64,000 nt of DNA. Source: Geosiphon pyriformis uo1 (lineage: Eukaryota; Fungi; Glomeromycota). This document shows positions 13,861 to 63,315 of the stretch, piece after piece; position 1 is the stretch's first letter; each line of letters starts with the position of its first letter. The stretch spans positions 30,622 through 94,621 of the forward strand of contig JAAOMT010000496.1 of NCBI GenBank assembly GCA_016748015.1, given 5' to 3'. The notes beneath the pieces are model-generated. The model was not told where the DNA came from, made no database searches, and saw nothing but the letters and a program-made list of their open reading frames with translations. Both the position numbers and the translations under genes were made by a program.

Positions 13861-14049
13861 TATAAAAAAATTGAAATAAAAAAAATAAAATAAATTGAAA
13901 TTATTTTTGGTGTGTGGGTTTTTATGTTTATTTTTGATTTTGTTTTCAGTATTTTTGTTATGTTTTTGTGGAATTGTTTCTAAATTATAAGGGAATAACT
14001 ATAGTAATATATATAATTTAAGTGTTCAAGTTGAGAGGTTGTTCAATGA

Positions 14050-15402: not shown

Positions 15403-15459
15403 TGTTTGTGGCTGTCTTTGTTGGTTAAGTTGAGTGTTGGCTTGTGTTTTCTAATTTTG

Positions 15460-18699: not shown

Positions 18700-19060
18700 T
18701 GTTGTCCTTGATAGGAGAGTTGTAATTCTTGGGTTTCCCAGTCTAATTTTGCATTGGCTTTTTGGAGCCAATTATTTCCGACAAGGGCTTGATACTAGGG
18801 CGCATCCATTACAAGAACTTTGACTAGAATGGTGATTTCATTAAGAGTAAATGGAAAATTGTCAATTTCTCCTACTGGAGTCTTTTTCATGCTATCAGCA
18901 GTGACAATTACTGTCTGAGCTGGTCAGTCAACATTTTTCTTTAACTGTTGCATTAACTGGTAAGTGATAATGCTTCTGGTGGATACACTGTCTAGGATCA
19001 AGCAAATTGCCTTTCCTTTGACTTCTGCTTTGGTGTACATAGCAGTGATTGCTTTTTGTT
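18700..19060 (-). pseudogene. Retropepsin-type aspartic protease, disrupted
   Basis: AMYTKAEVKGKAICLILDSVSTRSII (decayed LDSG) and a downstream ALVGNNWL motif. Confidence 0.85.
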
Positions 19061-19299
19061 TGTTGGCGACTGCATTACTAAGCAGGAATAGTGACTCATT
19101 TGCTTCGAATTCAAAAGAAAATATATCTGAAAGGTTGGCATTTTCAGCAATTCTGGCTGGTGGGATTGTGGTAGGAGTATAGGAAGGGTTTTGTTGTTGT
19201 GCTGCAGCTCTACCTTCCAAGAGTGCAGTATAGTGAAAATCCTGTTCTTCAGGTATTGTAAAATAGCTAGGTTGAGTGTGATAGTGGTTGGGTTTTTGT

Positions 19300-21092
19300 T
19301 GAGCTGGATTTTAGGGAATTAATTGATTACTTTGATTGATTCTGTTGGTTGGGAAATGGTTCTGTGGTATGAATTGGTTTTGCTGGACCAATCTTCTTGC
19401 TGGTACTTGATATTGTTGAGTGGGTGGTATCTGATATTGCTGAATTGGTAAAGGTTGCTAATATTGTTGTTAAATTGGTTGTGGAGCTGGTTGATAATAG
19501 CTGTTTTGAATTTGTGGTCTTGGTGAATAATAAGTTGGTGATGGGAGTTGGCAATAAGATTGTTGTGATGAAGAGTAATGTTGATTACTCCTGTTTTGTT
19601 GGTCTCTTTGTAGTTTCCTGCAATCTCGTTTCCAGTGTCCTGGAATTCCACAATAGTGACAATTTTGAGATTGGTTATTGGATGATGGTCCAAAGTTGTT
19701 TTGGTTGTGTCACTGTAGTGGTTGATATTTATGTGGTTGTTGCTGCTGTTGTTGCTGGTTTGTAAAATAGCTTTCAACCTTCTTTGTCAGTTGGTCTATT
19801 TTTTGTTCAGCTGTTGAGCTGGTTTCTCCAATAGCCAAGTTAACAAGTTTGGTGTGATTTGTTTCTTCCATTGTCATTTTATAGCTTTTTGCATATCTAA
19901 TAGCAGTTGCTAAGTCTGCTGGAGCATGTGGATGGACTTTTTTAATCAGTTTGTCTTTTAACACTGCTATAAACTGATCCAGAATTTGAGCATCAGAATA
20001 GTAGTTATTGGTTTCTAATTGTCGGATTCGTCTGAGAAGTTTGTTAAATCTTCTAAGATAGGTCATAACAGTTTCAGATGTTTCTTGTTTGATATTGTGA
20101 AAGTGGTTTCTGAGAGTGATAGAGGTATTGTTGTCAGTAAATTGTTGTAGAAAAGCATCTTTGAATGCTTGCCAGTTTTCAAATGGTTCTTCTAAATTTT
20201 CAAACCATTTTCCTGCTGTTCCTTGGAGAAAGTAGGAAATTGCTTTAAGCATTCTTGCTGCAATCCAACCATTTGCATCTCCTGCTTTTTGAACTTTGTC
20301 AAGCCATTCTTAAGGACTGATATCATTGTCTTCACCAATGAATTCCGGAATTTTTGCAATGTAAGCAGTTGCCATTTCTTCTTCGTTTTCTGTAATTTCT
20401 TCTGGTTCTGATTTAGTTTCTTCACTTTTCAAGCTTTCTGAATGATTACTTTCGTTTTTTTGTAAGTAATTAATGATATTGGCACTTGTTGATATTGGTT
20501 TTTGTTGTTGAGTAGAATTTTTAGATGACTGAAAATCTTCTGGTCTGGAGAAACAGTTAAGTAGTGAACTTGGTATTTGTGGTTGAACAAGTGAAATTGG
20601 AAATAGTGTAATAAAAAGTGGTAATTTGACACTGGTTTCTTGTTTAGGTGTTTGCAAGTGTTTGGCAGTTATCTTTGGTAGTATTGGAGTGTTTGAAGTG
20701 ATTCTTGAGTATTGTTTCACTTTTTGTTTGTCCTTGTTGCTTGTCTCTGTTTCTAATTTAAAATTAAGAGAATATTTGGGCTGTACTGGGTATTTTTCTT
20801 CACAGTACTCAATAATATTAAAATTAAGTTCTTGGAAGTAGGTAGCAAGTGTTTCACTGTTCAGGTTTTCTGTTTCCAATTGTGAATAGTGCACTAAATT
20901 ATTGTAGAGATTGCTTCGAACTTCCGAAATGTTGTAGTTTCTAAAAAGATAATTGTTGATGCAATTTTTAATATATTGGTATACTGATTTCTTGACAACT
21001 TCAATTCCGTCTGGGATGTTAAATCTTTGCTTGCAGTAGGTGTAAATTGACTGATGATACTCTAGAGTTGTTGTGTCTGGTGTGGTTGCCAC
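19300..21092 (-). pseudogene. Gypsy gag (long N-terminal extension, capsid domain, CCHC knuckle)
   Basis: ORFs 20310-21092 and 19710-20252 (YFLQGTAGKWF...FLQQF...KQETSETVMTYL) and knuckle CHYCGIPGHWKRDC at ~19620-19665. Confidence 0.88.
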
Positions 21093-21120
21093 TTTGAATT
21101 TGTTGTTGCTGTGTTATTTT

Positions 21121-21135
21121 TGTGGGAGAGCACCA
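21121..21135 (-). promoter_or_regulatory. Primer-binding site of Gypsy B (TGGTGCTCTCCCACA)
   Basis: TGG start 2 nt after the 5' LTR end; complementary to a tRNA ending in ...GAGAGCACCA, identity not determined. Confidence 0.75.
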
Positions 21136-21137
21136 AA

Positions 21138-22122
21138 TGTTACCAGAGGTTTTTGGTCTCTTTTCTTAAATGTTGTTAATGTCTGTTTGTTGAAAATTCA
21201 CATTTTTTAGAAGTAGTTGGACCTCCAGTAACTGAATTTATTTTCAAATTATCTTCTATAATTTGAACTGCTGGGCTTATAAATAGAATGGCCAATTCCT
21301 TGCCAGTTACTTTATGTAGTTATATTGTAGTAAATGTTAACTCTTTCCCAAGAATTGCTCATCTGGAAGCTCACTAAAAATGTGTAGTTATTTTGCTGTG
21401 AAAGTCAATTCTTCTACAGGAATCTTGTCTGTAGACTACTTTAATGATTGTAATAAGAAAATAAAAGAAAAATAAAAGAAAAATAAAAGAAATGTAAAAG
21501 AAATAGGATTTTATCAAGGAAAACGTTTTTCTATTCAGGTCTGGAATTACTAACAGTTTATTGAAATTGGTAGCTAATCAATTTCAAAATGTTAGTTGGG
21601 GATTTTCCAAGTGCAATAATTAAAAAATTTGGTTTTTTTGAATTATTTGATATTTATTTCTTTTTGTGTGTATAGAAATGGTTCTAGTAATAAAATCTAA
21701 AGTAAGATATATTTTCTCGAAAAGAGAAGCTCTTCTTTTATACAATTTGTCATAACACTATTCTATAAACTTGAACTTTGCTCTTTTCTACAATTTTGCT
21801 GAACTAAAGCTACATTTTGGCAAACTACAAATTATTTCTGTGAACTATTAAATATTTCAGTAAACTATCAATTATTTTGGTAACTTTCTACAAATTTTGG
21901 CAAACTTTTGAATGTTACATAGTTCCAGGTATTACATGATTGATTATCGCAATTAAGTTACATTTGTGTTCTGTACAAATTGGGTTATTAATTAAATAAT
22001 AGTTTCAGATATTTTGCTAATATAATAAGTAATAATTTGAAATGATAATATATGCTAATTAATGATAGGAATTATAAGTGTGATTTTATGCTAAATAATA
22101 TCTCTAATTTTATCTGGTAACA
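21138..22122 (-). repeat. 5' LTR of Gypsy family B
   Basis: Perfect 10-bp terminal inverted repeat TGTTACCAGA...TCTGGTAACA; adjacent PBS. Confidence 0.95.
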
Positions 22123-22126
22123 ATAG

Positions 22127-24563
22127 CCTTGATCAGGGAGAGATGTTTTTGTCTCTACTGTAGAAGATATTTTATGATCTGCTTTTCTGTAAAATCAAGA
22201 AGCATGAACATCTGTTTGGCTACAGAATGTGCTCAAAGTTTTTCATAAAAACTGGCAAGCCTGATCTGAGGAATGGCTTGACTTCTTTTTTTGCTGCTGG
22301 TGCCTTTGTTAATAACACAATCTGGGTTGACAACTGTTTGACAGCTACACAAAACATTTTAAACATAGCCAGTGAGTTTTTTGCTATTAATGACATTTTG
22401 ATAAACACAGATAAAACAGTTACTATACCTATTAATTAGGGTGCCCAGGATGCTGTTTTGTTTATTAGTAGATCTAGGATTGCAATAGCGAGAAAAAAAG
22501 AGTCTCACAGGTACTTAGTTTCAGCTGTTTTACAGTCTATAGTTGGTTACAGACTGCAATTTAGCTTTGCCTCTAAGAGTGTATGTGAGAAGTGGAACAG
22601 ATTATTGAAAAAAGAGCTTAAGCTCAAAGCTAATCTGTCTACAGACTTTCCTAGTGAGGTGTTGTATCACTCTGAGTTTTATGGACTAAAAACTTTCAAA
22701 AAAAAGCTGACAGAAAATTTGTTGACTAACTTGGTTAATTTTGCCAATGCTGGTGGTATTCTTGGGAAATTTTTTGATCATAGGACAATGGATTTGTAGG
22801 TGGTGAGTTAAACACTCCAGCATTCTCTACATTTTCTGATCACATTATCTATTAGTTCTCTGAATTGTTTTCTAGCTGAAGCTACTTATGCTCTCACTTT
22901 GTGCAACTTTTCCTTGGGTGATACAATTCTTAATGTGTTTTGAGCCAGGTCTGGTGTACCCATTTTGGATGTGCTGGGCTTGGGTGTTTTCATAAGCATA
23001 GTCAAGTTTCTTAAAAGGTACAGCTTTGTTTTTACTAATCAAATTCTGAATCAACATAGTAAATGCTTCACTTAAGAAACTTTTCATAAATGAAAAAAGC
23101 TGGACCCTAGAAATCCAATTCCTGCCTGGTTTGTATCTCTGTCTGAATTTGTTGGGAATGGTGGTTTGGGTGATAACTTGGCTCTGGCATCTCGTCTCAC
23201 TTGTGATGATGTGTCTTGTGATATCAGTTTTGTTTCTAAGTGCTTACTTGTCTCTGAGTGTAGTCTCATTGAAGTTTATACAGACAGTTCTGTTAGAGGT
23301 ATAAGAATCATTGGTGCCTGTGGTGGTGCTGCTGTCTACTTTCCTGCAACTGACATGAGTGTTAGCATAAGAGTTTATGGCTTGTTGTTCTTGACGTTAG
23401 TGGAGCTACAAGCTATTGCTTTAGCTTTGGAATGTATGCTTGCTTTCAGTGCTGTTATTTTGTTCATGAACAGTCAAACATTACTGAATATGTGTAAGTT
23501 TGGTGTGAGTGTGTCTGGTCTTGATTTTTGCAGAAAGTGTTGATTAGAAAAGAAACATATTTATCATTCTATTTCAAAAAAGAATCTTTCGGTCATGTGG
23601 AAAAAGATTAAAAGACATTCAAGTATTGTTGGGAATGAACAAGCTGATTTTTTTGCTAATGCAGCAGTCACTTCTAAGTCTGTGCTTTCTTTCAATGTGC
23701 CATACTGCTTTTTTGGTATTGAAAACCAGTCTGTTTTAGGAAATATGCATCATTTTGTCAGAGGTTTGTTCAATGCTATTAATTTTGTCAATTGGAAATC
23801 CAAGTGTGCTTTCTATGTTGTGGACGAGAATTTTGCCTGTATAATTAATATGAGCAGATCTTTCAATATCTGGCATTCAAACAGTAGGATCTGATTGGGT
23901 TATACCAGTTCATCTTCAGCTTCTCTGTGATTGTATCTTGTGAAAACACTTCACTGCTGCTTACCAGTTGCTGTAAGGAAGAGGTTGTACAATCCCAAAT
24001 ATCCCAGCATATTATGTATCAGGTGTGGTTTAATTGAAGATTTGGATCACTCATTTTTGTGTGAACAGGACAAAAGTGCCAGAGAGAATTTGTTGTTGAC
24101 CACTTAAGTAAAATAGTATAAGATGGTTGGTTGTTCAGTCATGGAAGATTTGGTAGTCAAATCTATTTGTGAAGCTGGATCTGCTGGTGGCTTATACATG
24201 ATATTGGCCAAAAAGTTTGTTTTAAAAAGCTGGATGGCTAATGCTGTTCATCATTTCGGCTCTTAGTCTGGTAGGGATTTGGTCATTAGGTTGGTTTGCA
24301 GTATTTCCAAGTGTCACAGATCCAATGTTTGGTTACCTGCTGCTAAATTAAGATTCTTTTATGAAAAACATAATTTGTTGCCATGTAATGGCTCTGCTGT
24401 CCCTTTGGTTGTTGGTTTGTCATTCATTAGATCTGCTGGGGTCATCTGTGGTTTTGGTGTTAGACTAGGCATTCATGTGTGCTTTGGTTTGCATTTTCAT
24501 CTGTCCAATTTAGACTTTGGTTACTTAAGTCATGTCCTTGTAGTGGATTCTGTTAGTGTATAG
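22127..24563 (+). pseudogene. LINE ORF2 C-terminal part (RT, RNase H, CCHC finger)
   Basis: LDQGE; AFVNNTIW (from FVDD); RNase H VYTDSS / VELQAI / KIKRHSSIVGNEQADFFA; CIRCGLIEDLDHSFLC. Confidence 0.9.
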
Positions 24564-27500
24564 TGCTGCTTTAACTGGGCCAAGTGTCTAGTTATGTGTA
24601 GAAAGAGCATGAGCCACACTTAATTTAGAATTCTGTTTGATTTTATGTATTTAAGTAGTAATTGGGCTGCACTCGCAAAACAGAAATAAAAAATTAAAAA
24701 ATTAAAAATTTTCTATATTTTTTAATTATTCAACAAATTAAAAAATTTTTTTAACCAATCAAATATTGAAAAAATAATAAATTATTAAACAATATATTAA
24801 AATATTTTAAATAATATTTTTTTAGATATTTATAATAATTAAATTTAAAAAACATTTAAAAATTAAAATAATAATCAATTTTTTAATATTAATACTATTA
24901 AAAAATGACTTAAATATAATTTGGTTTAAATTTATTAGACATATAATTTATTTAATTAAAGCAATTTATCTTATAATTCTTAATTTTTTAAGATATTTAT
25001 ACTTTAAAAAAAAATACTTTATTAACTAATATTTTTGGTCTATAAAAATTATTAGTTAAAAAAATTCAAAAATATTTAATTCCAATAGTTAATAAATTAT
25101 TGTAATAATAAGTAAAATAAATATTTATAACTTTTTAATATTCAATTGGAAAAAAATTTTAAGTGGTTTTAATTTTAATATTTTGTAATATACTAATAAT
25201 TCAAAAGATAAGTATTTGTTTAATTTAATTAATTTAAAAATAATTTATTAATTATTTTATGATTAAATTTGTGATTTTTTAGGACATTCATTATATTATA
25301 TCTGTTATAAATATAAAAAAACATTTAATTTATTTAGTAATAATAAAAATATAAGAAATAATTATTCTGGCTTTGAAAAATATTTATTAAAAATCTTAAT
25401 ATTCAATAATATTCTGTACAAAATTATTAATAAGCTCAAAAAATATATATTATTATTAGCAAAAATTTAAGCTATTAATTAACATGAAATTATTTTTATA
25501 ATTTTTATTAATATATATTTATTTAAATTATTATTTATTATTTTATCAAGTTATTCAATTTATTATTTAATTTATAATTTAATTTATACAAAATACAAAT
25601 ATAATTAAATTGTAATGATTAAATTATATAATACACTAAACTATATAATATTAAAAATTTATCAAAATATTTAAAAATTTAATAAGATACTTAATAGTTT
25701 ACTAAAATATTAGAAAAAAATAATAATATAAAATAGTATTATAATAAATTATATAAAAAAAAAGCTTTTTTTTAAAAAAAAATGTATTTTTATTTAAAAT
25801 AATCAAGCAATTAGTAAAAATTATTTTAAAAAATTTAAAAATTTTAATTATTATTTTTTTTATATTGTTAAATAGTCTATAGTTAAGATTTTTTGTAAAA
25901 AATTAACTTTTATAATAAAGTAATTACATATTATTTATGAAGTTTATAGATAAAATATTTTTGCAAAGTAACTATATAAAATAATTAATATAAAATTGTT
26001 CATTTTAATATAAATTTAATAACATATATAGTTTAAAATATAAAAAAATACTTTGGAAGAAAATTAGCTTATTAGAATTTATTGACTTTTATCAACAATA
26101 AATTAATAGCAAAATAGTATTAATAATATTAAAAAAGAAATAAAAAAATCTTTAATAACAATATTAATAAATTAAAAAATATTTAGAGTATATTAAACAC
26201 AATTTTTTAATTTTTATATATAAAAATCCTTAAAGTAAGACAAATTAATCATGTAATTAACTATTTTTAATAATAATATATAATATTAACTAATAAAATT
26301 AATTTTAATTTTTATATAATAAATTCTAATTAACAAAATTAATTCATTAATTTATATTAATAATATATAAAAATAAACAAAAAAACATTTAATTTTATTA
26401 TTACAAATTGATTAAAAAACTTATTAATTGTTTTTTTACATATTATTATTTTATTATTAAAAAATAATTATTAATTGTTTTTAATATTTTTTAAGAACAA
26501 ATCTTAATACTTTTTTTTAAATATGCAACAAATTTTTTTATTTTATCTGTGTTTTTTTATTTGCTAAATAATAATACTAATTTTTAATTCTATTAAATAA
26601 TTTATTTATTTTATATAAATTTTTTTCTATAATCTTTTTAATTTCTTAATGTTAAAATACTTCTATTAAGCTATAAAATTAATATATATCCAAATGGTTT
26701 TTTTAAAAATTTTTTTGAAAACTTTTTTATATTTTAAATGTAAAAATATTAATATTATTACAAAATTATTTGTAAAAAACATAATAACAAAAAAGCATAT
26801 ATTAACAAAAAAATTAGAATTACATTCTGTAAATAAAAGCTTTATTACTTTTTTTTTATAATCTTTTTAAAAAAGTATGCACTTTTTTGCAATAAGTTTT
26901 TGAACAAAAAAAAACTTGTGAATTCAATAAAAATTTTAAAGCTTAAATTAACAATAAAAATTGTTTAAATATAAAAATTAAGAACAATTTTTTTATAATG
27001 GTTTTTTTTTTAATATTAACTTTTAAAATTATATGATATATACATATAATAAAAAAAATAATAATAATTAATAAATAATATAATCAATAAAATAATTAAA
27101 GAATAAAAATATATTATATTATTATTGATTACTATAGAATTATCTCTTTTTTTTCTTTTAGTAATATATATAATTAAGTATTTTATAATAATATTATTTT
27201 ATATTATAATAATATACTATTTATAATATACAATTATAAATATATGAAATAATATGATTAAATTTATATAATAAATATAATCAAAATTATTATAAAAATA
27301 TACTAATTTAAATATCTTAATTTATTATATTGTCTTATTTATATAAAATAATTACAAATTTGTATTTAATTTAATATGTTTTTTATTTTTATTCTAATGT
27401 ATTTTTTATTTTCTGATTTAGTGCATTTTTATTTGTATTTTTTATTTTCTGATCTATTATGTCTTTAATATTATATTTTTGATTTTATTTATTGCTTAAC

Positions 27501-30768: not shown

Positions 30769-33005
30769 TTTTTTTTTATTAAAATTTAACAAGCAAAGCC
30801 CAACTATTATTTAAAAATTAGGAACAAATTAAGAGTTCTAGTGCTAAATGTAGTTTATGTGTTTTTTATATATAACCAGCTACTTAAGCCAATTTAGACT
30901 ATACTATATTAATACTTTAAAAGAAAACTTATCCAAAGAAGACATCCTCTAAATAATTTTAAATAATGTAGTACTATTATTAATTAATTTAACCAACTAC
31001 TTAACTATTTTAAAGACATCAGTCTTAACAACAACAGATTTATGTTTTCAGAATGACAACAAATTAGAAAACATATTATTATTAACAGAAAACAAACCTA
31101 CATAAAAGCCAGACATATTAATGCCTTTATAATTATACTTAGTTTTCAAAGCAATTACCTTGTATTTCGGTTTACCAACAGCTTTGTTGAAGAAATCCAT
31201 GTGTACCAAAACTTTATTGACCTTAAAGCCAAGAGCATTATTTGAAACCAAGTTTTTATTAATAAATTGTTCAAACAATTTTACCATGAAACCAATAGGC
31301 TTAGCAATAGAATTAACCAAAGTAAAAAGCTTAGCCAACTCCAATTCTAAAGAGATCAATCAAAAAAAGACCATAAAATTATCAAATATTATATCAGCAG
31401 AAAAAACTGATTCAACTAAAGAACCAGAGACCAAAAAAGACACAAAAACAGCAGCTTTGGCATATAATATACTACCAACAACATAAGAGGTAAACACCTT
31501 AGGAATTCTAAGAGGGAAAAATGAAGGCATCTTACAATTCAAAACCAGATAATCTGAATTTTGGCACCAAAAACAGTGCCAATTTTTAGAAGTTTTTCAC
31601 CAGATGCAGCACTTTCTCACTGTACTAGTTTTAATAACAACAGAATCCAAATTAGCTTGAAAACCAAATGTAACCAAGACAAATCAGAAATGTTAACCAA
31701 AATTAAAAAACTGAAAAATAAAATATGTTTGACTACTAACTTGAAAGATTATATTATTAATCTCAAAAGCAGTACAGCCAGAAGGGAGGTTAACCAACTT
31801 AATCTTGAACACTATCTTTGTCCACCAAAATCAACCAATGAATGAAAACAGATGTAGCAGTATTTAATTCTTTAAAATAAACAACCACATATTGCCAAAC
31901 ACTAGCAAACTTCAATACAACATGAGAAACTTTACCAAAAACACCAAAAGCTGACTTAATATTAGTAACAGATATATTTAAAAGCATATTATGCAGTATA
32001 ACAGCAGCAGGAAAAGAACCAGACTTAGAAACCACTAAAAACTTGGCAATTTTAAAAGTGGCAAGACAAACAAAGCTTGTAAGCTCAACCAAAAATGCAA
32101 CATTCAGAGAATCTTGAGAAGCAAACTTCATACAAAAAAGCTTTACATTGTCCTTAAAAACAGATTTTGCATTCAGAAAACCATGTATAAACTGAAAAAC
32201 AGTCTTAATATAAGTTAATTTAATTTTAAAAGTAGCACCAAATACCAGAGTAAAAGCCATCTACTCAGCAAATTTTTGACAACTAATAATGATTTTCTAA
32301 GTATCACTTACAACAGTACCAAAAACCAGAGAAAAAGATAATTCAGTTTCTATTTAGTTAGCCTAGTCTCCAAGAACAGATAACCCAATAGAAAATATTT
32401 GCTTTGCTTTCTAAATCAGTAAGAATTTGCTAGAAAGTACCATATTTGGCAATACAGCCAGTGGTTAATTTTGGCCCATTTTAGATAACATGCTGGATAA
32501 AACAGTAAAGATCTTATCTAAAATCTTATTTGGAATCATAAAGGAGTTTGGTGTAATAATAGTAGAGACAAACAACTGCTCTCATTTTTTTAAACTTTTG
32601 GTCTTTTTGACCATTTTTTTTGAAAAAGAGATCCTAGTAACACTTGGTGTTAAAGCTACAAAAGGGAAAATCAACTTATTGACTAATTTGTTATTAAAAA
32701 TTTTTAGGCTCTTTAAAAAAGTAGAGACAATACTGGAATTAACCTAAATGTGTTTCTTTGAAAGAACTTTGACTGATAAAAAACCAGCCAAAGATAAAAA
32801 AATTGTTTTAGTAGCTACTAAAAACAGTTTTTTATGATTATTAAATAAAAAAAAACCTTTAAAACATTTTACCTAATTGCTTTTACAATAAAAAAAGCTT
32901 TTTTGGTTAAAATCTTATTAAATATTTTAGGAAAGATATCAGATACAGCTTTTTTACTCTTTGCTCTGGTTATGGTCATAAAATTAAGAAGACAAAAAGT
33001 ATTTT
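30769..33005 (-). mobile_element. ORF1-only non-autonomous non-LTR retroposon, copy A (HAL1-like), degenerate
   Basis: A single decayed ORF runs from ATG 32979 to stop ~30904, colinear with 41518-43646 and with the same 5' start. It is followed directly by the LINE-type 3' UTR (30790-30903) and an A-run. No endonuclease or RT sequence. Confidence 0.8.
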
Positions 33006-33299
33006 TAATTTAATAAATTATTATATTAATTATTTATATATAATATAATATATATACTTAATTTATTCTTTTTTTTTTGTTTACTTTATTTTTGTTTTTT
33101 ATTATTATATATTTTAAATATAAGTAAAAAAAAAACAAACAAACAAAATATCTTTATAACTACAAAAAAAATATTAAAAAAACTATAAGTACAGTATATT
33201 TAATAATAGTTAATATTTTTATATATTTTAATAGTATTATAGATATTATTTTTAATTTTTTTAATAATAATTTTATTTTTGGTGTGTAAATATTTTTTA

Positions 33300-37700: not shown

Positions 37701-40700
37701 TAAAAAGGCTTTAAAAATTGCTGCTATGGTTTTTGATAGTGAGACATAAGTGAAGTATTAAAACAGCTGTTTTTAATTAGAAAAAGATACAGAAAATCTA
37801 AATATTGTAAATTAAAAATGGCCAAAGATGCAGCTATTAAAAAAGCAATTAAGAAACAGATAAACAATTTTAGTTTAAACAAAGGCAGCATGATAAGAAG
37901 TGTTTTGGAATGATCTTTTCACAAAGTTGTTTTGAATCATTTGTTAATTGAGAATGAGTTGGTTTTAAAGCTAAATAAAGTAAAAAGTAGAGTGGATGGG
38001 ATTATAGTGAATTGAATAAAAGAGTATAAGATATCATTAATGCTTTCTGCTGTATGATCTTGCCAATATGTATCTTTAAGCTATGTTAATAAGAATGTCT
38101 TTTTTGATGTAATAGATATGATCAGTATAAATAAATTGATTCAAGTTGTTAATAATTTGTCTAAAAACAAAGCAGTTGGTTTGTTTGAAATATCAAATAA
38201 ATTGTGGAAGCATTATAGTAAAGTAATATTAAAGTGCTTATTGAGTTTGCTGAATTTTTGTTTGTATTTTAAAGAAGTTTCTGATTTTTAGAAAAAAGCA
38301 TGGATCTTAATAATCTCCAAGTTATATGAATAGAATGGTGTTTTAACAAATATATAATTAAAATAACTAGGAAGATTCTATTAAAAATTTTATCAGATCA
38401 TATTTCCTCTTCTTATATGAAATATAATGTCTTTTATGGTAACAACTTTTCTGTTTTAAAGAATTCTTTGACTTAATCTTTTATGTTTGCTATTGGCTTG
38501 ATAATAAAAAATGCTCTGAAAAAGAGCTGAAAAGTCTGGCTTGTTCTTCAGAATATGTGAAAGACATACAATTTAGTAGAATAGCATTATTTGAAGACTA
38601 GTTTAAGACATATTAGAATATATGACAAATTTATTAAGTTTTTTGAATACATACATAAAAGCAAAGTTAACAGAATAATAACTAATTTTGGTCTTTTAGA
38701 TGGTTATAAAGTGTTGAATAGACTAGATTAAGGTAAAGTGTTCTTACTACTTTTATAGAAAAATTTTTATGATTTTTGTTATGTAAAGTTAAAAGCAAAA
38801 ACATTTGTGTGATTACAGAATTAATACAAACTTTGTGACAAAAACAAACAGATTAAAATCTGGTAAAGACAGATCTTCCTTTTTTACAGCAAATGTTTTT
38901 AATAACACAATTTGAGTAAGAAATAGTTAGGCTTCAATGCAACACATTTTGAATATTGTTAGTAAGTTTTTCAAGATAAATAACATTTCTATTAACAATA
39001 ACAAAACAGTGGCTATTTCTATTAATCAGAAGATCAAAATTGCATCTTTGCATATTTATGGTTAGCTTATTGTTATAACCAAATACAGTAAACATCATCA
39101 ATATTTGAGAATATATTTCTCAATGGAAGATATGTCTAAACTTAGTCTTGCCAAGACACAGTCTGATTTTAAGTTCTTCTTAAATTTAGTTCTTAGAAAG
39201 ACTTTGTCAGATAAGCAATTTTTATATCTGGTTTTGACTGTTTTGTAGCTTATTATTAACTATTGCACACAATTCAGCTTTGTTCTAAAGTGGTATGCCA
39301 AAGATAAAATATTATGATGAGAAAAGGACTAAGGTCAAAAGCCAATTTGCTCAGAGATTTTTTTAATAAGACCTTGTATCATCTATTTCTTTATGGTTTG
39401 AAAACATTTACATAATTACAGGCTGAGAGTAAAATTGCTGTGCTGATGGTGTTTTTTAATTCATTTGGAATTCTTGGAAGATTGTTTGAACATTGTTTTT
39501 TGGACTTGCAAGTTTTGGGGTGGACTCTTATAAATTTTCTATAGCATCTTGTCAAATTAATGATCAATTTTTTAAATAACTTTCTTGTGAGTGCAATAAA
39601 AGTGTTAATGAACAACAAAATTTCCTTGGTTAATAATTTTTTTTGTGCATTCTGTGGTTCTGGCCACTTTGCTATGTTTAAAATTTTGGAAAATTATTTT
39701 TATTTTAGTGTAGTTTACTTTCTAAAGCATTTTGGTGTTGTCTTTAAAGACAGATTATTAAATAAGTATAAAGTATTAATAAAATAGAAGATCTTTTATT
39801 GCTAGAAGAGACTAGATCTTAGGAGCCCAGTTTTATTGTGGTTCAAAAAAGCTTTGATTTTTATAAACAAACTTTCAGTTGTTTCTAATGTATCAGTTTT
39901 TGTTTTAAGTTATTCAGATCTGTTGCATTTTAACATCTTTTTAAATATTCAAAATATTTTACATGAATTGTGAATAAATATTTTCAATGTATACATGAAT
40001 ATATCTTTGAAATACTTAGATATATCAGAGGTTACTGGTAGAGCAGCAGTCTATTTTTTGGATATTAAGATGAGCATAGGCATTAAGGTGCATAGGTTGT
40101 TGTCTTTTATATTTACTAAATTACAAGCAGTTGCCTTGGCTTTGAAGTGTGTTTTTTCTGTTTGCTCTGTGGTTGTGTATTTGAATAGTCAATTAGCATT
40201 AAATGTATATGTCTCGAAATTCATGCTTGATTGTTCAGACTTTTAAAATAAGTGCTAAGTAAAAAGGCATTATATTACAAATTTAATAAGATCTAAGAAT
40301 ATTTCTGTTAAGTAGATAAAAGTCAAGAGATATTTAGGAGTTTCAGATAATAAAAAAGCTAATATTTTAACAAGTGAAGCTGCACATTCTGGTTTGTTTC
40401 TTTTTATAAGAATTTATGAAAAATTTTTTATGGCTAATGGCCAGGTCATATTAGAGAATATTTGCTATTTTGTTTGAGATGTTTATTGGTCTATACATCA
40501 TGCTTAGTGGAAAGCTAGTTCTGATGTTAAGATTGTAAGTAAATCAATAATTGTAAACATTGATTGAATTAACACTGTTGCAGTTTAGCATCCAGATTTG
40601 TACATATTAGTAGAATTTACAAACAAAACTTTTATTACTCTTTGTATTTATTTAATAAAAGCAGTTCATAAGAGACTGCTGACTGCAATAAGAAAAAGAC

Positions 40701-41385
40701 TCTATAATAAGACATATTCAAGTATGTTGTGCCTATTATGTAATAATATTGAACTATTTAATTATATTTTCACTTGTCCAAAAGACTCTGATGTATGTGC
40801 TAGCATTTTATTGAGTTATGTTAAACTTTAGAAATTCTTAACAAATAGTTGTTGTATATTGTTTTCTAGGATGCTATATATGGTTTTTTCTAGAATTTTG
40901 GATGTTGGTGTTTACATGGTTTTGTGTAAAAATTTTGTTTTTAGAAAATGAATGAATCAAATAATTTCTATTTTTAATAATCAGAAAAAAACATTGTTAG
41001 TAATAATTAATTTCATTTGTAATTTAGCTAAGAGACATTGTGAGTTATGATTGTTTAGGGCTAAATTCAGGGTGAAATTGAAAAAAAATAGTCTGGTTAG
41101 AAATATTGGCTTAATTGCTATAGCTTTAAATAAGATGTCAGAATTTCTGTCTATAGAAGTTATTTAGCTGCTCAGTATTTTCAAATCTTTTGCTATTAGT
41201 TTTAGTTTGCATAAGATGTGTGTTTTTTTTTAGGCATTAATAATAATGTTAGAATTTATATAAATATATAGTGTAGTTTTAATTAACCCAAGTAGCTGGT
41301 CACATGTAGCAAGCACATAAGCCATATTTAGTTAAATTTTTTTGTCATATTTTTATATGCTAAATAGTGGTTGGGCCACACTCAT
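34741..41385 (+). mobile_element. LINE copy 3: full-length, heavily mutated; its A-rich tail is displaced to 43683-43702 by the ORF1-only element
   Basis: Same 5' start as copy 2. ORF1 ~34896-36620 and ORF2 ~36620-41271 with endonuclease, RT, RNase H and CLLC finger. 3' UTR 41272-41385. Confidence 0.9.
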
Positions 41386-43673
41386 TTTTTTTTTTATTTG
41401 CTTAACAAGTGCAGTCCAAAAACAATCTAGTACTATACATCAAAGAAATAATTTTAACTAGATGTTAATCATGTGCTTTCTATATGTGACTAGTTACTTG
41501 GACCAATCAAAAACACACTACACTGAAACAATAAGAGGTGGGAATAACCCCAACCCACGAATTTTTTTAATAACACTATTCAGATTCTTAGAATCAAAAA
41601 TAAACCCACTAAGAAATAATCTAGTAGATTCAACACTACTTCTAATCTCAGCACCCAACATCCGCCACAAAGCTATAACACACTCAATAGTGTCCTCACT
41701 TAAGAGAGAAGATTTGACAGCCTGCATATCATCATAATCCATACCACCAAAGTCAACTTCAGATCTAAGACAAGCAATGTCCTTAGACACATCAACCATA
41801 AGATTGGCAAAATTATTAGAAGCATATTTCATAGAAAGGAGATCTTTCTCAATCTGAACAGCTTTAACAGCATTATCATCAAGGAGACAAGATACTAAGA
41901 CAACCAAAGAGCCAACAGGCTCAACAATAGACTTCACCAAAGCAGCCAAATCCGAAATTTGCTTTTCCAAAAAGTCCAATCTGGACCCAACAGCAGGATT
42001 AACAACAGTCACAGAAGGGGTGGAAGCTATCAAAAGAGAAAATTCAGACATAACAGAGGGAGCAAATGCCTTAGCATAAGACAAAAAATCAACAAAATAT
42101 GGTTTGAACACCTTGGGAGTCTTAGGAAAGAGAGATGAAGCAACTTTACAGTCTACAGCCAAGTGACCTGTTTCTTGACACCGAAAACAATGTCAACAAT
42201 TAAAAGTCTCTCACCAGATATGACACTTTCTAAGCATACCAGTTTTGGCAACAACAAAATCCAAATCAGCTTGGGAGCCAAATGTAACAAGAGCAAAATG
42301 AAGACAATGACCAGAATCAGGAGACTGAGAAATGAAACAAGTCTTGCCACTAATCTGAGAAATCATATCACTGATTTCAAAAGCAGTACAGCCAAGAAGA
42401 AGGTTGACCAACTTAGCCTTAAACCCATCACGAGACAAAATAGTCTTATTTTGATTCACTAAGGGAAGAACTCTAACACTATCTTTGCCTATCAACACTA
42501 ACCAATGATTCAAAGCAGACATGACAGAATCCAACTTTTTAAAATGAACTACCACATATTGCCAAATGCCAGTAGGCTTCAGTACAACACGAGTAACCAT
42601 ACCAAAAACACCAAAAGCTGTCTTAATGTCAGCAGCAGACACACCCAAAGGCATATCATGCAGCACAACAGCAGCAGAAGGGGATCCAGACTCAGAAACC
42701 ACCAAAGACTTGGCAAATTTAAGAGTGGCAAGACGAACAGAGCTTGTAAGCTCAACTAAAAATGCAGTATCTAAAAAGGTTTGAGAAGCAAATTTCACAC
42801 AAAAAAGCTTCATATTGTCTTTTAAAACAGACTTAGCACCCAAAAAACCATGTACAGACTGAAAAACAGTCTTAACATGAGCCAACTTGATTTTAAAAAT
42901 AACACCAGGCACCAGAGTGGAGGCCACTTACCCAGCAAACCTTTGACGACTAGTAATAGTTTCCCAAGCACCACCAGAAGTAGCACCAGAAACTAGAGAA
43001 GAAGATGATTCAGTTTCCATTTGATCAGCCCAGTTCTTAAGAACAGATGACCCAACAGGAGGAGATTGTTTTGTTTCTAAAACCAGCAATAATCTGCCAA
43101 AAGACACCACATTTGGCAACACAGCCAGTGGTTGATCCAAGCCCATCTTGGATGATGTGCTGGATAATGCTATGGAAATCTCATCTAAGATCTCATTGGG
43201 AACCACAAAGAAGTTCAGTGTAACAATAGCAGAGGCAAGTGATTGCCTTCACTTTTCTGAACTTTTGGTCTTTTTGACCATTTTTTTGAAGAGGTGGTGC
43301 TAAAAGCACCAGGTGTTGAATTTATAGAGGGGAAGACCAGCTTATTTACTAGTTTATTATTAAAAACTTTTAGGCTTTTAGTTGGGATGGAGACAACACT
43401 GGAACTAATCCAAGTGTGTCTCTTTGAGGGAACTTTGACTGGTAAAAAACCAGCCAAAAATGAGGAAGTTGCTTCAGTGGCTACTAAAGGCAGCTTATCA
43501 CAATTACTAGGTAAGAGAAAGGCTTCTAAAATGTTTTGCCTAGTTGCTTCTACAACAGAGAGAGCTCCTCTGGTTGAAATTTTATTAGATATCTCAGGAC
43601 AGATATTAGGTGCAGCTTTTTTACTTTTTGCTTTAGTTGTGGTCATAAAATTAAGGAGACAAAGAGTTTTTTT
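41386..43673 (-). mobile_element. ORF1-only non-autonomous non-LTR retroposon, copy B (HAL1-like), full-length with poly(A) and 9-bp TSD
   Basis: TSD CACACTCAT at 41377-41385 and 43674-43682; poly(A) 41386-41395; LINE-type 3' UTR 41400-41517; one ORF and no pol. Confidence 0.9.
41518..43646 (-). pseudogene. ~709-codon ORF1-like protein (Ser/Pro-rich N-terminus, RRM-like region, CCHC, coiled coil), a few stops and one frameshift
   Basis: Track fragments 43215-43682, 42928-43206, 42211-42927 and 41518-42162 join into one reading. Knuckle CFRCQETGHLAVDC. Segments WLVLIGKDSVRV, SRDGFKAKL and GKTCFI align with LINE ORF1 (SFMIVKDFMHV, SKDQFRALL, GKTCII). Confidence 0.85.
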
Positions 43674-43984
43674 CACACTCATAAAAAATTATTAAAAAAA
43701 AATAATTATTGCTTTAATTGTTTTTATAATATTATAAAAATTAATATATAGTCTAATTATTAATTAAGTATTTTTATAATTTTTGTTTAATAATAATATT
43801 AAATTATTTTAGCTTAATATTCAGTTTAAATAATCTATTCATTATTAAATTTGTGACTTAAATATAATTGGTTTTTAATTAATTAATTTAAAATTTTATG
43901 TTAATATAACTGCTATTTAAAGATTAACTAAATTTAATAAATATATTATTAAAAAAATACTAATATTTTTTTATTATTATAATT

Positions 43985-45398
43985 TTATGAATAAAATCTA
44001 AACACTACTTAACACAATACATCAAATTAAGTAATCTAAATTAGACATAAATTATGCATTTTCTATATATAACCAGTTATTTGGGCCAATCAAAGATACA
44101 GTATATATCTATTTTAGCAGAAATTACATAATTAACACCAAAAAAAAAGTAAATAGCTTAAATAAACCAAAACTAATATTATGTGTTTTTGTAAATTCAA
44201 GCAACTTAACAATATTGTCAAAGAGCAAAGATAACAAATTATAAACTATTGAAAACACAGAACTATTAAGTATAATTAGATTATTTTTTTTCATAATTGT
44301 TCTATATTTAAATTTTATTAATTATATATTAACACAATAAACCATCCTCAAATCTTATATAAAGTTAATAATTTTCTTACTTTCAATTTTGGCACAATCA
44401 AAAACAGATACAGTTTCCAAAAACCAATCTTTAAATACAAAATAATATAAACAATATCATTAAATATACACAAAAAAAACATTTACAAGATACAAAATAA
44501 CAATAAATTTAATTCTAATATAAAACTTTAATGGGCCAAACATAACTTAAATAATTTTTTGCAAACAACAGATTCCATTTTACATGTAAAAAAGTGATTA
44601 AAAATTTTTACACCTCTATAATAGAGACATAATACACTAAGATATTTTTTATTATATAAGCACTTATAAACAACAACAGACAAGTAATTATATATAGTTT
44701 TCATAAAATACAAATATAAATCAACAATGAATTAAAACTATATACAAGTCAGAATGCTAAATTAATAATATTAGAACTTAATCTATATCTTCAATTATGT
44801 TTTTATTAACAATATTAGACCCAGATCCAATTTTTTAGCAAATATAATTAACAGTTTTAAAAACATTATAAGCAAAATAACAAATATTTTCAAATATTGT
44901 TATTCTATTAGCTTTGATATATCTTTTTTTAATAAGAATAGAAAACACCACATTTGAACACAAAGTTATATTAGCTAACTATTAGTGTACTTATTATTCA
45001 AGACACCTAAATGACTTTTAATTTTAAACCAAAAAACATTAAAATTTTTATTTCTAATAGAATTTGCAATATAATGCCTTTTAAGCCAGCACTAATTAAA
45101 AAAGTTTGACAAAACCATATTTAATTTTGCAGCACAAACATCTAAAGCAGCTTGGCTATTTAAGTACAATATAGAAACAAAAACACATTCCAAAGCCAGA
45201 GCAATTATTTGTAATTTTGCCAATATAAAAAAGATCAAACTATTAATCTCAATGTCTATATTCAAATTCAGATTAGCAAAAAATACAGTAATATTATATT
45301 TTATGTTATATATACCCAAATTTCTTAAAAATTTATTGTATAAACATTAATAACATCCAAATTAGCATCAAAAAAACATTGTCTGATTGTAGAAAAAT
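43985..45398 (-). mobile_element. LINE copy 4: 3' fragment (RNase H, CCHC, 3' UTR), heavily decayed
   Basis: ORFs 45092-45319 (AKLQIIALALEC...LNSQAALD) and 44528-44713; conserved 3' UTR at ~43990-44105. Confidence 0.85.
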
Positions 45399-48095
45399 TG
45401 GTCTTCTTTGGACCTTTTATAGTATTCTATTAGGTTGTAAGTTAGTCTTGTGAATAATTTTTTGGCAGATGTGATGAAATTTTTTTTAGAGAATAAGCTA
45501 TTTTTGATAAACAATTTGTTCAGTGCTTTTTGTAAATCTGGCCAGTTTTCAATGTCTGGTATTTTGGGTTATTCTTTGTATTACAATTTTGTTCTTTCTT
45601 TAAAGCAATTTGATGTTGTTTTTGATGATAAAATTTTGGACAAAAAAAAGAGAGTGATAGATTGGAAAACATTTTGACAGTAGAAAAAATTGGATCCAAG
45701 AGGCTCTGTACTTTACTGGTTTACTCTGGCAGCTGGGTTTATGAGTAAACATATGTTTTTGGAGATTGAGTTTATTAATATTCTTAAATTACCAGTGTTA
45801 AGTATCTTGAATTTTGTGTTGTTCTCTGATGTTTGTGGTAGTCTAGTAGAGATTTGGTCTAATTGTATTAAGGTTTACAAAATAGGTCTTTAAAGGGTGC
45901 TAGTTCTGTTAAAGTGGTATTACAGTTGATTATTTGGGGTCTCAAATCAAATAACAAATCTGTAATGTAGTGCTTAATTGATGTATTGATGTTAGTAATT
46001 TCTGAAGGTGTGTTTTCTAAAGGTTTTGGTTGAGTCTTTTGTATAATAGACAGAGATTCAATTGATAGTTTTATCCATAGCTTCTCAAAATTACAGTTTT
46101 ATCAATTTTTTTTTCAGCATGATGGCCAGTAATCCTCTTGATAAGATATTCTTAATTCCAAGTATCCACTTTTATTTCTGGGTCTTTTACCAGTGCTATA
46201 TCCTGATATCATTATCTCCACATATAAATCTTTTTAATCAAATTAACAAACAACAAGAAAATAAAACAAGAAAAAAAATAAAAAAAATAAAAAAATAAGC
46301 CAAGGCAATTTGCACATTAGTATTCCATCAATAACCATGATCAAGAGCTATTGTTCTAATGTGGTTAAGTATTAATTACTATTAACATAAAGTGTTAATA
46401 GTAAAGAGTGGATTTGAGATAATAAATAATTATTTATTAATATTTGTAATGTAGAAAGTTGCTTAGATCAAATCTAAACTGAGAGATCTGTCTTTTCTGC
46501 TTTTAATGCTATTGCTATATATACTTAATTTATGTTCTATAAAATTGCTCACATTCTGGAGCAATGTGCTATAATTTCTTAAACAATGCTCACATTGCTG
46601 AGCAATGTAACCTAATTTTCTAATATCGCTCCACATTGTTAAGCAATGTGCCATAATTTTTGATATTGCTTCATATTGCTGAACAATGTGCTTACATACA
46701 AACTACTACTTCCTTATTGGTCTACTATTTTCTATATCAGTTTTCTTTTTATGAGTAACAGTGACTAGTAGTACAGCTGCCTATTTTCCAGCTACAAACA
46801 TAGATATTGGGATTAGAGTACAAAGACTTTTGTCTTTTACTTTGGCTGAGTTGTAGGTCATTGCTTTGGCCTTGGAATGTGTTTCATCTTCTTGCACTGT
46901 GGTTTTGTATTTGGACAGCCAATCTGTAATTGATGTTTATGTGTCAGAGTCTTTTTTTGCCATGTCTGACTTCTACAATCATTGCTGGATTGAGAGATTA
47001 CATATTGTCAATCTTATTAAAAATAAAGACATCTTAGTTAAGTGGGTGAAAGTTGAAGAACATTCAGGAATTCCAGACAATATTAGGACTGATGAATTGG
47101 TATATAAAATCACTGTTTCTTTGCTTTTTTTACCAGTTGAGATTCAAAAACAGTTTTTGGTTGCTAAAAATACAGCTGTGTTTGGTAATGTTCATCATTT
47201 TGTGTATGATATTTATTGGTCAATTTGCTGTGCTTGTTGGAAAATTGGTCCTAGTTATGATATTGTTTCAAATGTCATAATTAAAGAGATAAATTGAACT
47301 ACTGCCACAAATATTTAGCATCCTAATCCACACATATTATTTGAAATTACTAGTAGAAGCTTGGCAAATATATACACTTATTTAATGAAAGTAGTACATA
47401 GACAGTTGTCAATAGCAGTTAAGGAGAGATTGTATAACAAAAGTTATTCTGGAGTGCTATGCTTGCTATGTAGTAACATAGAGTTATTTGACTATGGTTT
47501 TGCTTGTTCTGATAATATGAGGCTCCATAAAAATGTTTTAAATAAAGCTGCTAAAAGATGAATGTTATTAACAGATCTCTTTTGCTTGCCTATATCTGCC
47601 ATTTTGTGGTTATATACTACTATATGCAAGAGTTTTGTATTAAAAGATTAGTATGCCAAGACTGCTCTGGTCTTTAAAAAAAAGAGGAAGGCCACTTTGG
47701 CTTTTGTTGAATATGTTAAGTCTGTGGTTAAATTGCATTGTATTATGATGTAACTTATTAAGTTCAGACATAGAATAGATATAGAAAAAGCTAGTTTGAT
47801 TAAAAATAATGATGTGGTTTTAAGCTTGTCTCATTGCTTAATATCTTTGTTGTTAGATAAAATGGTTTGTATGCTTGGTGTTTTAGAATCTTTTACTGTC
47901 AATTTTGGTAGATGCAAACTGTGTTGTTTTTTTTTGGTTTAGACAATAATGCTTTTGTTAGTATAGGCACATAGTGTTGCTTTGTCTGGTCCAAGTGACT
48001 GGTTACATATAGTAAATGTATGAGCTGCATTTAGTGTGTTTTACTTAGTTTGGTTCTATATACTAGATAGCAGTTGAACTTTATTTATAAATTGC
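45399..48095 (+). mobile_element. LINE copy 5: 3' fragment (tether, RNase H, CCHC, 3' UTR) interrupted by a solo LTR
   Basis: ALECV...YLDSQ...WVKVEEHSGIPDNIRTD; CLLCSNIE; stop 47972-47974 then the conserved 3' UTR. Confidence 0.88.
45918..46760 (-). mobile_element. Solo LTR of Gypsy family A with 4-bp TSD
   Basis: Colinear with 1657-2512; ends TATTACAG...GAGTAACA; flanks GTGG/GTGA. Excision restores the LINE RNase H frame (SVKVASSTAAYFP). Confidence 0.92.
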
Positions 48096-60900: not shown

Positions 60901-63315
60901 TTTATAATACTCATAAACACATAATTATATTATTTACATTAACAATGTTTTTTTTTGTTTTTTAATAATTAATTAATAAAATAAATAAAATATTTCATAA
61001 AATATTTTGCTCTATTTAAATAACATTATTGTATATTCAAAAAATAAAGGTTTGTTTACTTGGAACTTTAAAAGAGCCAAGTTAGTTTGGTACAAAGCTC
61101 GAGTAAGTTGAGCTCAAGCTGAATTTGAGCCAGAATTTTTAAAGCTTAGCTTAGTTTTATTAACTTATATATAATTGTGTTATGTGAATAATATGTCTTA
61201 AACAATTTTATGAACATTACCATTTTTGTGCAAAACTAATAGATTATAACATATTATCAATAATAATGGATCAGTTTAGGGCTTAAGTTTAACAAAGATT
61301 ATTTAAAAATAACGAAAGATTATTCTGCACTTATTAAATTTCGAAAAAAAAATGCTTTCCAAATTGTTTTTAATAATAAAATATAATATTATGCGTTTTC
61401 TACATGTGACCAGGCACTCGGAATTATTTCCAATTTATAATATGTATAATAATTTTTTAAAAAACTATTATTTAATAAAGAAAAACTTTTTTAAGAATTT
61501 GCTACAAATTTTTTATTATTACTCTCTTATCAGAAAAGAAAAATTTGAGAAACTGCCTTCATAACTGAGTTTATTTTTTACTATTTCGACTTTTCGACCT
61601 TTTTTTACAGCAAAATTAGCATACATACAATATAAATCATTCACAAATAAACCAGCCTTATCTCTTTCAGCTTTCGAATGGGTTTTCATTAAAATATTTT
61701 GCCTGTTTTCTTCTTCCTTAATTATTTGTTATTGAATTTATTAATAAAAGCAATTGCAACAAAAAATAAAAAATTTATCAACCAAAAAATTTCAATATTA
61801 ATATAATAAATACCCAATAAAATTCAAATTAATTAAAAAATAAAACAATATAAAATATTTTTTATAACTATTTTCAAAATTGAATTGTTTTATAAGATAA
61901 ATAATAATTACAAAACATGAAGTAAAATTTTTATTGAAATTATTGCTGTTATATTAACTTAGTTGATTTGTAATAATATTTTATTGTTTATTTTAAAAAC
62001 TTGTTAAATAAAACATTGACCTGATAATTAATTTTATATGCAAAAATAGTGTTAAAGTTTTTAATCATTAGACTTTAAATTATAAACTGTTTTTTTTGGC
62101 TTTAACAAAACTTTAATGTTTTGATTTATTGTTTAATTTGATTGGTTAGTTTATTGTTATGTGCTCAAATTACCTGGTTAACTAACTGTAAAAACTCAAG
62201 TCTAAAATTTGATTTTAAAATAAATTTTACAAAAAAGCCAATTTATGTTTTATTTATAACAATATAAAAAAATTTACTAATACAAATTTTTATTACAATA
62301 AAACAGATAAAAACATTAATAAGTAATTAAAATGAATAAAAAACAGTTTATTTATAAATAAATTATTATTAAAGCAAAAATATTTCAAGCCATTTTAAAT
62401 GATTGCTCATTAATTTTTGAATTTTTATAAGTTTTTTTTTGTTTTTTAAATTATCTTTAAAAGTAATAAATTTCAATTTATTTTTAATTCAAAAGTATTA
62501 AATAATAAAAATATTATATCACCATAAATTTAGTTTTATATTTTTATAATATAAACAATCTTTTGTCAAATCTTCAAATCTAATTTTAGTTGCCAAAATA
62601 CAACAGATAATTTTTTGATGTGTGTTTAACACATTTATTCTTATATTTTTTATTTTTATTACTTATATGTTAAAATATTTTAATAAATATTATTGTTTGA
62701 TTCAAAGTAAACTAAAACAAAAGTTTTGTAAATATTTCAGTTTTTAATAATGTGATTTTCTCAATATAATTAATTTATATTTCACGAAATTGCTTTATTG
62801 AAATAAAGATTTTTTCATGATAAAATTCATTAAACTGTTTCTAAACAATGTTAATTAAATTGGTGTATTGACATACCAAAATCCAAGATAAAATTTAAAC
62901 CAATGAGAGCCAAGAAAATTACTTTAAACTTGTTATTAAAGTCTATTATTGATAAAGTAAAGTAATATACCTTTTCTTGATATTAAGAATTTTTTTGAAG
63001 ATGACATTTCGATTGTTACACGAAAAAATCTCATTTAAATTAAAATAGCAATAAAACAATCTCTACCTGTTTAATTAATCTGGCTGAAAAGTTGTGTGTT
63101 TTCAAAACTTTTCCAACATTTCTAATTTTTTCAAGGTCTAGTCTTTTCAGGAATGTGATTAAAGGTTGAAATCTTTATTTATTAGCATAGCAAATTTTTT
63201 TTTTACCCATATAAAATATTCAAGGCTTAATAATCTTCTTGTTTTGGTTGAAATCATGTCTTTAAATTCATTAACTAAAAATACAACTTCAATTTTCAAC
63301 TGACTTGAAAGAACA

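Follow-up and report, generated by a model that had tools for sequence, protein, structure and literature searches.

A probably LINE-dependent, ORF1-only retroposon family with signs of 3′ tail exchange in the fungus Geosiphon pyriformis

Introduction

Retroposons that keep the first open reading frame (ORF1) of a long interspersed nuclear element (LINE) and depend on LINEs for the protein encoded by ORF2 (ORF2p) are known in mammals, flies and Dictyostelium; a fungal case has apparently not yet been described. Here we present a candidate from Geosiphon pyriformis (Glomeromycotina), represented by a 2288-bp unit within a 64,000-nt stretch of contig JAAOMT010000496.1 (the window, to which all coordinates without another label refer). 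A preliminary description of the window had called this unit a fungal "HAL1-like" retroposon, carrying ORF1 only and sharing its 3′ end with the LINEs around it.

HAL1 (half-L1) elements of mammals are dispersed and poly(A)-tailed, encode ORF1p only and depend on LINE ORF2p (PMC5753468). The Geosiphon element is likewise a dispersed, poly(A)-tailed, ORF1-only LINE derivative, and as an analogy the comparison stands. As a statement of family membership it does not: HAL1 families arose repeatedly from L1 and stay members of it, whereas the Geosiphon ORF lies outside the clade of resident LINE ORF1s. In addition, its host is a fungus, its partner LINEs carry an RNase H, only its two termini are LINE-like and its tails appear to have been exchanged.

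In Drosophila, HeT-A and the ORF1-only telomeric elements of the Jockey clade encode ORF1 (gag) only and rely on the ORF2p of related elements; such lineages can persist and found new ORF1-only lineages (PMC13534243). HeT-A-type elements form head-to-tail telomeric arrays, whereas the Geosiphon copies are single, dispersed and contig-internal, with target-site duplications. Experimental proof of principle for mobilisation in trans comes from Dictyostelium discoideum, where TRE5-A.2, which is without ORF2, is mobilised by the ORF2p of the autonomous TRE5-A.1 (PMC5633606). TRE5-A.2 targets tRNA genes and is simply a deletion variant of its partner. The Geosiphon element, in contrast, encodes an ORF of its own that diverged anciently, and shows no evident site specificity other than for A/T-rich targets.

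Another parallel is offered by pairs of a short interspersed nuclear element (SINE) and a LINE that share a 3′ tail, of which UnaSINE1 and UnaL2 of eels are an example. SINE tails derive from LINE 3′ regions and are recognised by the LINE machinery (PMC5786205). The Geosiphon element similarly bears the apparently structured 3′ tail of a putative partner LINE, but it is 2.3 kb long, protein-coding and equipped with a LINE-type 5′ end, whereas a SINE has an RNA polymerase III head derived from a small RNA.

Among fungi, LINE ORF1-derived sequences are very abundant in Blumeria graminis (EKA / Satine, Kryze), where most Avrk1-like consensus models consist of an ORF1 without ORF2 (PMC4641428). 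The EKA genes differ, however, in being truncated ORF1s that are read as effectors under positive selection, and they have not been presented as a distinct retroposon whose termini are shared. A recent survey of transposable elements in the Glomeromycotina does not mention ORF1 (PMC11952901), and our searches, which covered a library of papers, found no ORF1-only LINE dependant described as a discrete retroposon in fungi. We propose that the Geosiphon element would work like HAL1, HeT-A-type elements and TRE5-A.2, and is a member of none of them.

Results

An ORF1-only unit is dispersed through the Geosiphon genome

The window copy is a minus-strand unit of 2288 bp lying between two exact copies of the 9-bp sequence CACACTCAT. 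Its overall anatomy agrees with the preliminary description: a 27-nt leader, an ORF1-type gene, a 3′ tail and a poly(A) follow each other (Table 1), and neither an APE endonuclease nor a reverse transcriptase (RT) signal was found in it by Pfam scan or by tblastn with LINE ORF2. The suggestion that the unit was one of a family, and not a one-off, was amply borne out when the G. pyriformis genome (128 Mb, 792 contigs) was searched. At least 40 DNA matches on different contigs, 82-88% identical to the unit, extended over its nt 10-2298 with common ends; a few family copies were 5′-truncated, beginning at nt 175-444. Protein searches yielded a further 63-74 scored matches on many other contigs, and more than 5000 loose first-look candidates. 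Pooling the DNA and protein searches, the family comprises more than 100 distinct near-full-length copies, these copy numbers being lower bounds.

Thirty loci were fetched (L001-L030, L001 being the window locus itself), and 28 of them were scored for target-site duplications. ORF2 similarity was seen in none of the 30 (tblastn with LINE ORF2). The stop codon of the ORF was followed by the tail and a poly(A) in 27 of the 30; in L015 and L028, the match ended early at an insertion, with pieces of the tail ~0.9-1.2 kb beyond. These two later insertions measure ~875 bp in the L015 tail (L015:3715-4590) and more than 1 kb at the end of the L028 ORF (after 3451). At least 13 of the 28 scored copies were flanked by clear target-site duplications, 7-13 nt long, which abut the poly(A) and differ from copy to copy, and candidate duplications of at least 8 nt were present in 19 of 28 copies vs. 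31% of mismatched flank pairs used as a control. Short stretches of extra nucleotides were present at the 5′ junction of several copies, as is commonly seen for LINE-type insertions. With its poly(A), duplications of variable length and dispersed copies ending at a common 3′ end, the family has the marks of retroposons made by target-primed reverse transcription.

These data bear directly on the trivial explanation that the unit results from an error of assembly or annotation, or is an ORF that occurs by chance in AT-rich repeat DNA. The window ORF is indeed broken and the region is a dense nest of repeats, but the explanation is refuted by dozens of independent loci on different contigs, with common ends and an open ancestral frame, and we give it practically no weight.

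The fetched copies are ~85% identical pairwise, in a star-like pattern, and ~7-8% from their ancestor. The family looks old and largely inactive. Substitutions of C>T or G>A make up 68% of the total in the 30 copies and occur in every context, at frequencies per site per copy of 0.39 for CpG, 0.21 for CpC and 0.15 for CpA and CpT; between 15 and 39% of C sites are changed in each copy. The order of contexts (CpG > CpC > CpA = CpT) is unlike that of classical, CpA-biased repeat-induced point mutation (RIP). Stops shared among copies fall in non-nested patterns. They recur at the same codons because of the RIP-like hypermutation, and a comparison of shared stops is thus uninformative on descent. 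The column majority of the 30 copies is an open frame of 709 codons, and at least three natural stop-free copies exist: P0004 (708 aa, colinear at C705:145684-147807) and one each on C659 and C651. These intact copies are known from the genome protein search.

Both ends of the element resemble those of resident LINEs

The resident LINEs are ~6.9 kb long and encode an ORF1 of ~655 aa and an ORF2 with APE, RVT_1 and RNase_H domains. They were found by searching with the APE segment of the window; a genome search with PF00078 gave Ty3/gypsy elements, not LINEs, as its best matches. LINE copies that were fetched have open stretches of up to 1379 aa, and potential ORF2p suppliers are present in the same genome as the element.

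The preliminary description held that the tail of the unit is common to all five LINEs of the window, and this proved correct: nhmmer located seven full tails in the window, five on LINE ORF2 ends and two on ORF1-only elements, plus one fragment. Between the stop codon and the poly(A), 12 element tails and 8 LINE tails could be aligned without a single gap, and the homology between element and LINE fades within ~10 nt upstream of the stop. The tails appear to keep two helices, a hairpin and a longer-range helix (RNAalifold, pair counts). Helix cells were paired in 92.9% of cases vs. 85.5% in shuffles, none of 500 shuffles being as high, and 22-47% in slid controls, the structure having been derived from the same 20 sequences as were used for the pair counts. 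In helix 2, six of the nine pairs change on both sides, including a change from A-U to C-G, unattainable by transitions alone.

At the opposite end, the element and the LINEs are colinear over their first 50 nt, with 36 of 50 positions identical in an ungapped alignment (similarity score 22 vs. 6.9 +/- 1.2 for shuffles). This block contains the ATG of the element. Its LINE counterpart is 5′ untranslated region (UTR), and the LINE ORF1 starts ~140 nt later.

The 3′ tails appear to be exchanged at the stop codon

Three subfamilies can be distinguished by tail type: V1 (19 copies), V2 (8-9 copies) and V3 (3 copies). The ORFs of V1 and V2 show 2.2% differences, and the transversion distance between them (0.011) is equal to that within groups. 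Their tails, by comparison, show ~30% differences (transversion distance 0.153 between vs. 0.004-0.009 within groups), and the density of differences between V1 and V2 jumps at the stop codon (Fisher p 3e-27). Near-identical ORFs carrying tails ~30% apart, with the break at the stop, point to tail swapping, and the pattern indicates that the tails have probably been swapped as modules at the stop codon. The transversion distance of the V1 tail from the V2 tail (0.135) is larger than that from some LINE tails (0.066), and the V1 and V3 tails lie 0.06-0.07 from the nearest LINE tails. Searched for in the genome, the V2 tail matched at 118 first-look places; the donor of this tail could be a LINE or another subfamily of the element.

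The substitution pattern of the ORF is that of a selected gene

The ratio of non-synonymous to synonymous substitution rates (dN/dS) was 0.33-0.40 when V1 or V2 was compared to V3. Hypermutation shared by two of the three V3 copies could inflate the differences from the V3 majority, and the changes were therefore split into classes. Those that hypermutation cannot fake (T or A to C or G, and transversions) comprised 30 synonymous vs. 14 non-synonymous changes, against a neutral synonymous fraction of ~0.35 (p 5e-4 and 3e-3, respectively, for the two hypermutation-proof classes). The class of changes suspected of hypermutation looks neutral, as expected. Requiring agreement of all three V3 copies leaves too few sites for a selection test. 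Judged by its substitutions, the ORF shows purifying selection between subfamilies, which argues that the gene was under such selection while the lineage was already ORF1-only.

This result weighs on a simpler account of the element, namely that it is a passive deletion derivative of a lost LINE family: ORF2 would have been lost once and the remnant copied like a long SINE, with the ORF a relic without a role in propagation. Such an origin would fit the LINE-like termini, the LINE ORF1 type of the ORF and the decay of all fetched copies, and the parent LINE could be absent from a limited sample. A relic, however, would not be expected to show purifying selection between ORF1-only subfamilies or an ancestral frame fully open over its 709 codons. 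The ORF1-only layout is, moreover, kept in the diverged V1, V2 and V3 subfamilies and in an older copy at 30.8-33.0 kb of the window. Together with a lack of close LINE relatives among the best database hits, described below, these observations lead us to consider a passive derivative unlikely.

Purifying selection is also what one would see in a host gene family derived from a LINE ORF1 (cf. mammalian L1TD1 and the Blumeria EKA effectors), with a cellular or symbiosis function and spread by retroposition. More than 250 copies are annotated as "hypothetical proteins", and there is fungal precedent for ORF1-derived gene families (PMC4641428). There are, however, hundreds of copies, nested in DNA rich in transposable elements; they have LINE-type termini at the 5′ and 3′ ends, a poly(A) and target-site duplications, and nearly all are inactivated by hypermutation. 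No signal peptide or other host-type feature was seen, and the exchange of tails would suit selection for mobility, not for a cellular function. We hold a host gene family to be a very improbable explanation.

The encoded protein is a distant paralogue of LINE ORF1

The preliminary description had recognised the protein as a distant paralogue of the local LINE ORF1, and our comparisons agree. BLASTP aligned it to the local LINE ORF1 in the central RRM/CCHC region only (24% over 380 aa, E 7e-24), and its identity to the Geosiphon LINE ORF1s was 24-31%, confined to the central ~280-380 residues, vs. 36-66% among these LINE ORF1s themselves. The Pfam signals for the two domains lie under the cut-offs: RRM_1 was seen in the window element at E 0.005, and zf-CCHC on residues 486-501 of P0004 at 18.2 bits vs. 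a cut-off of 20.8. AlphaFold2, run on a shallow alignment of 32 sequences, returned a mean confidence score (pLDDT) of 37.9, the usable parts being the RRM region (pLDDT ~62-68) and the last 60 residues (~75-80). At low confidence, beta-alpha-beta units were placed at residues 310-385 and 436-468 of P0004. The model suggests a protein with a disordered N-terminal stretch of ~230 residues, two beta-alpha-beta units, two long helices and a small helical C-terminal domain.

A maximum-likelihood tree of the core region placed the element proteins in one clade with a long stem (support 100/100). This clade falls outside the one formed by 13 Geosiphon LINE ORF1s, a position on which long-branch effects are possible. 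The element is not, as had been argued from the window, a simple deletion of resident LINEs, given the low identity of its ORF to every sampled LINE ORF1 and its own clade outside theirs. The nearest neighbour of this clade is a LINE ORF1 of 668 aa, with a clear RRM, on a metagenome contig (L051:2584-5047). Overlapping the end of this ORF1 is a second gene, presumably the start of ORF2, which is truncated at the edge of the contig. No LINE ORF1 above ~31-33% identity to the element protein was found in the best 150 of 585 database hits, a further point against a passive derivative of a LINE.

All element-type database matches whose source was looked up come from G. pyriformis, where the top protein matches are annotated as "hypothetical protein G9A89_...". 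Gene models of this species that fuse neighbouring elements include P0120 (a LINE ORF2 end and the element), P0121, P0124 and P0229 (two LINEs).

The window copy is a dead insertion in a LINE tail

The 9-bp duplication belongs to the tail of a plus-strand LINE that ends at 41385, and the A-rich end of this tail resumes after 43682; the element was therefore inserted antisense into the LINE tail. The C-terminus of the host LINE ORF2 lies at 40469-41257, upstream of the split tail. One statement of the preliminary description has to be revised here: the ~709-codon ORF that it attributed to the window copy is the ancestral frame, given by the column majority of the 30 copies. The window copy itself no longer has this frame open: one nucleotide is deleted from the A-run 43280-43286, and there are four stops (TGA 43249-51, TAA 42928-30, TGA 42211-13 and TGA 42193-95). 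Its ORF has 74% amino acid identity to the intact P0004. The window copy is a dead insertion inside the tail of a LINE.

The element stands tail-to-tail with a LINE tail in 3 of the 30 loci: inside it in the window, 46 bp away in L002 (L002:3834-3956) and 74 bp away in L022 (L022:3853-3978). About 20 more LINE tails occur in the flanks of the 30 loci. The element may favour A/T-rich ends left by earlier insertions, or the proximity may be due to mere repeat density.

Table 1. Coordinates of the element, its insertion site and related features in the window
Feature	Position	Strand	Basis or remark
Target-site duplication, poly(A) side, CACACTCAT on + strand	41377..41385		within 3′ tail of + strand host LINE
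Target-site duplication, element 5′ side, exact CACACTCAT	43674..43682		sequence match
Poly(A), A10 on element strand	41386..41395	-	sequence inspection
3′ tail (UTR), ~122 nt, stop codon to poly(A)	41396..41517	-	gap-free alignment with LINE tails; nhmmer E 5e-31
ORF1-type gene, ancestrally 709 codons, broken in window copy	41518..43646	-	ATG 43646-43644, TAG 41520-41518
CCHC zinc knuckle CFRCQETGHLAVDC	42148..42189	-	plain in window copy
Central block, RRM-like domain(s), portion alignable to LINE ORF1	42211..42927	-	Pfam RRM_1 sub-threshold; BLASTP
27-nt leader	43647..43673	-	with first codons, makes up the 50-nt 5′ terminus colinear with LINE 5′ end
Host LINE 3′ tail, split antisense by element	41267..41385	+	nhmmer E 1.9e-22; A-rich end resumes ~43683-43710
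Second, older copy of element type, hypermutated, GC 27.5%	30769..33006	-	same 5′ start, own tail variant, poly(A)
LINE 3′ tail	24557..24682	+	nhmmer; ORF2 C-terminus upstream
LINE 3′ tail	7208-7331	+	nhmmer; ORF2 C-terminus upstream
LINE 3′ tail	47969-48093	+	nhmmer; ORF2 C-terminus upstream
LINE 3′ tail	43982-44105	-	nhmmer; ORF2 C-terminus upstream

Other family and LINE remnants in the window

A second copy, which the preliminary description had placed at 30769-33005, is indeed present, with the 5′ start, tail and poly(A) of the family. It is heavily mutated, with 17 in-frame stops and 73% identity over nt 11-1594, and its tail is a further variant, closest to the tail of a young LINE family. 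Its transversion distance to the main family is 0.03-0.055 over codons 1-535 and 0.25 over codons 536-709. The shift at codon ~536 may mark another module boundary, close to the CCHC knuckle, or a C-terminus that evolves fast.

The fragment seen by nhmmer is a lone 35-nt piece of the tail motif at 61388-61422 (minus strand), with no ORF near it. One plus-strand LINE (~8300-12300 and 22100-24690; ORF1, APE, RT ... RNase H, tail) is split by an opposite-strand Ty3/gypsy long terminal repeat (LTR) retrotransposon at 12300-22100 (minus strand), and a run of N, either an assembly gap or a withheld stretch, occupies 7484-7831, right after a LINE tail. Outside the window, a 1304-aa Ty3/gypsy pol at L043:3290-7204 has a dUTPase between protease and RT (Pfam PF00692, E 1e-24).

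Discussion

The simplest reading of these data, and one in which we have good confidence, is that the unit belongs to a non-autonomous, ORF1-only non-LTR retroposon family of Geosiphon pyriformis that is LINE-dependent. A source element would consist of a LINE-type 5′ terminus of ~50 nt, presumably a transcription start or internal promoter, a 709-codon gene, a structured LINE-type tail of ~122 nt and a poly(A). Its protein, with a predicted disordered N-terminus, RRM-like domains, a CCHC knuckle and a helical C-terminus, would probably act on the element's own RNA by packaging it. For nicking and target-primed reverse transcription, the element would depend on the ORF2p (APE-RT-RNase H) that resident LINEs encode; this protein would recognise the shared structured tail, as in tail-sharing SINE-LINE pairs. 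We infer this mobilisation in trans from the tail structure held in common and from the apparent swapping of tails. The preliminary description also raised the idea that the element might modulate LINE activity. A selected gene, combined with modular tail exchange, would keep the element matched to the LINE partners available.

Several observations weigh against this reading. Subfamily V3, on which the selection analysis depends, consists of three copies only, and none of the 30 fetched copies is intact. The donor LINE of the V2 tail was not found among the sampled LINE tails, the nearest of which lies at a transversion distance of 0.10. In one gene model, P0121, a complete element ORF is joined with the second half of a LINE ORF2, for which a nested insertion or an annotation error is the simplest explanation. 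Finally, the run index for G. pyriformis holds three DNA runs from one study and no RNA run.

LINE dependence leaves room for a more specific history, which we advance tentatively and would put at somewhat short of an even chance. The element may be a long-lived, protein-coding LINE hyperparasite that outlived or left its parent LINE, keeps only LINE termini, and swaps its 3′ tail at the stop codon to follow LINE subfamilies or switch between them. That it would have outlived or left its parent is suggested because its gene falls outside the clade of all sampled resident LINE ORF1s.

One practical consequence concerns annotation: hundreds of G. pyriformis "hypothetical proteins" are copies either of this element or of a LINE ORF1, and chimeras of neighbouring elements occur among the gene models. 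For the biology of such elements, what G. pyriformis offers is a family that is abundant in an early-diverging symbiotic fungus, with apparent selection on its own gene and what looks like clean tail exchange at the stop codon. It bears on the question of why a non-autonomous element keeps ORF1, a candidate answer being that the protein is needed in cis on its own RNA, and on how such elements may stay matched to the reverse transcriptase of their evolving LINE partners.

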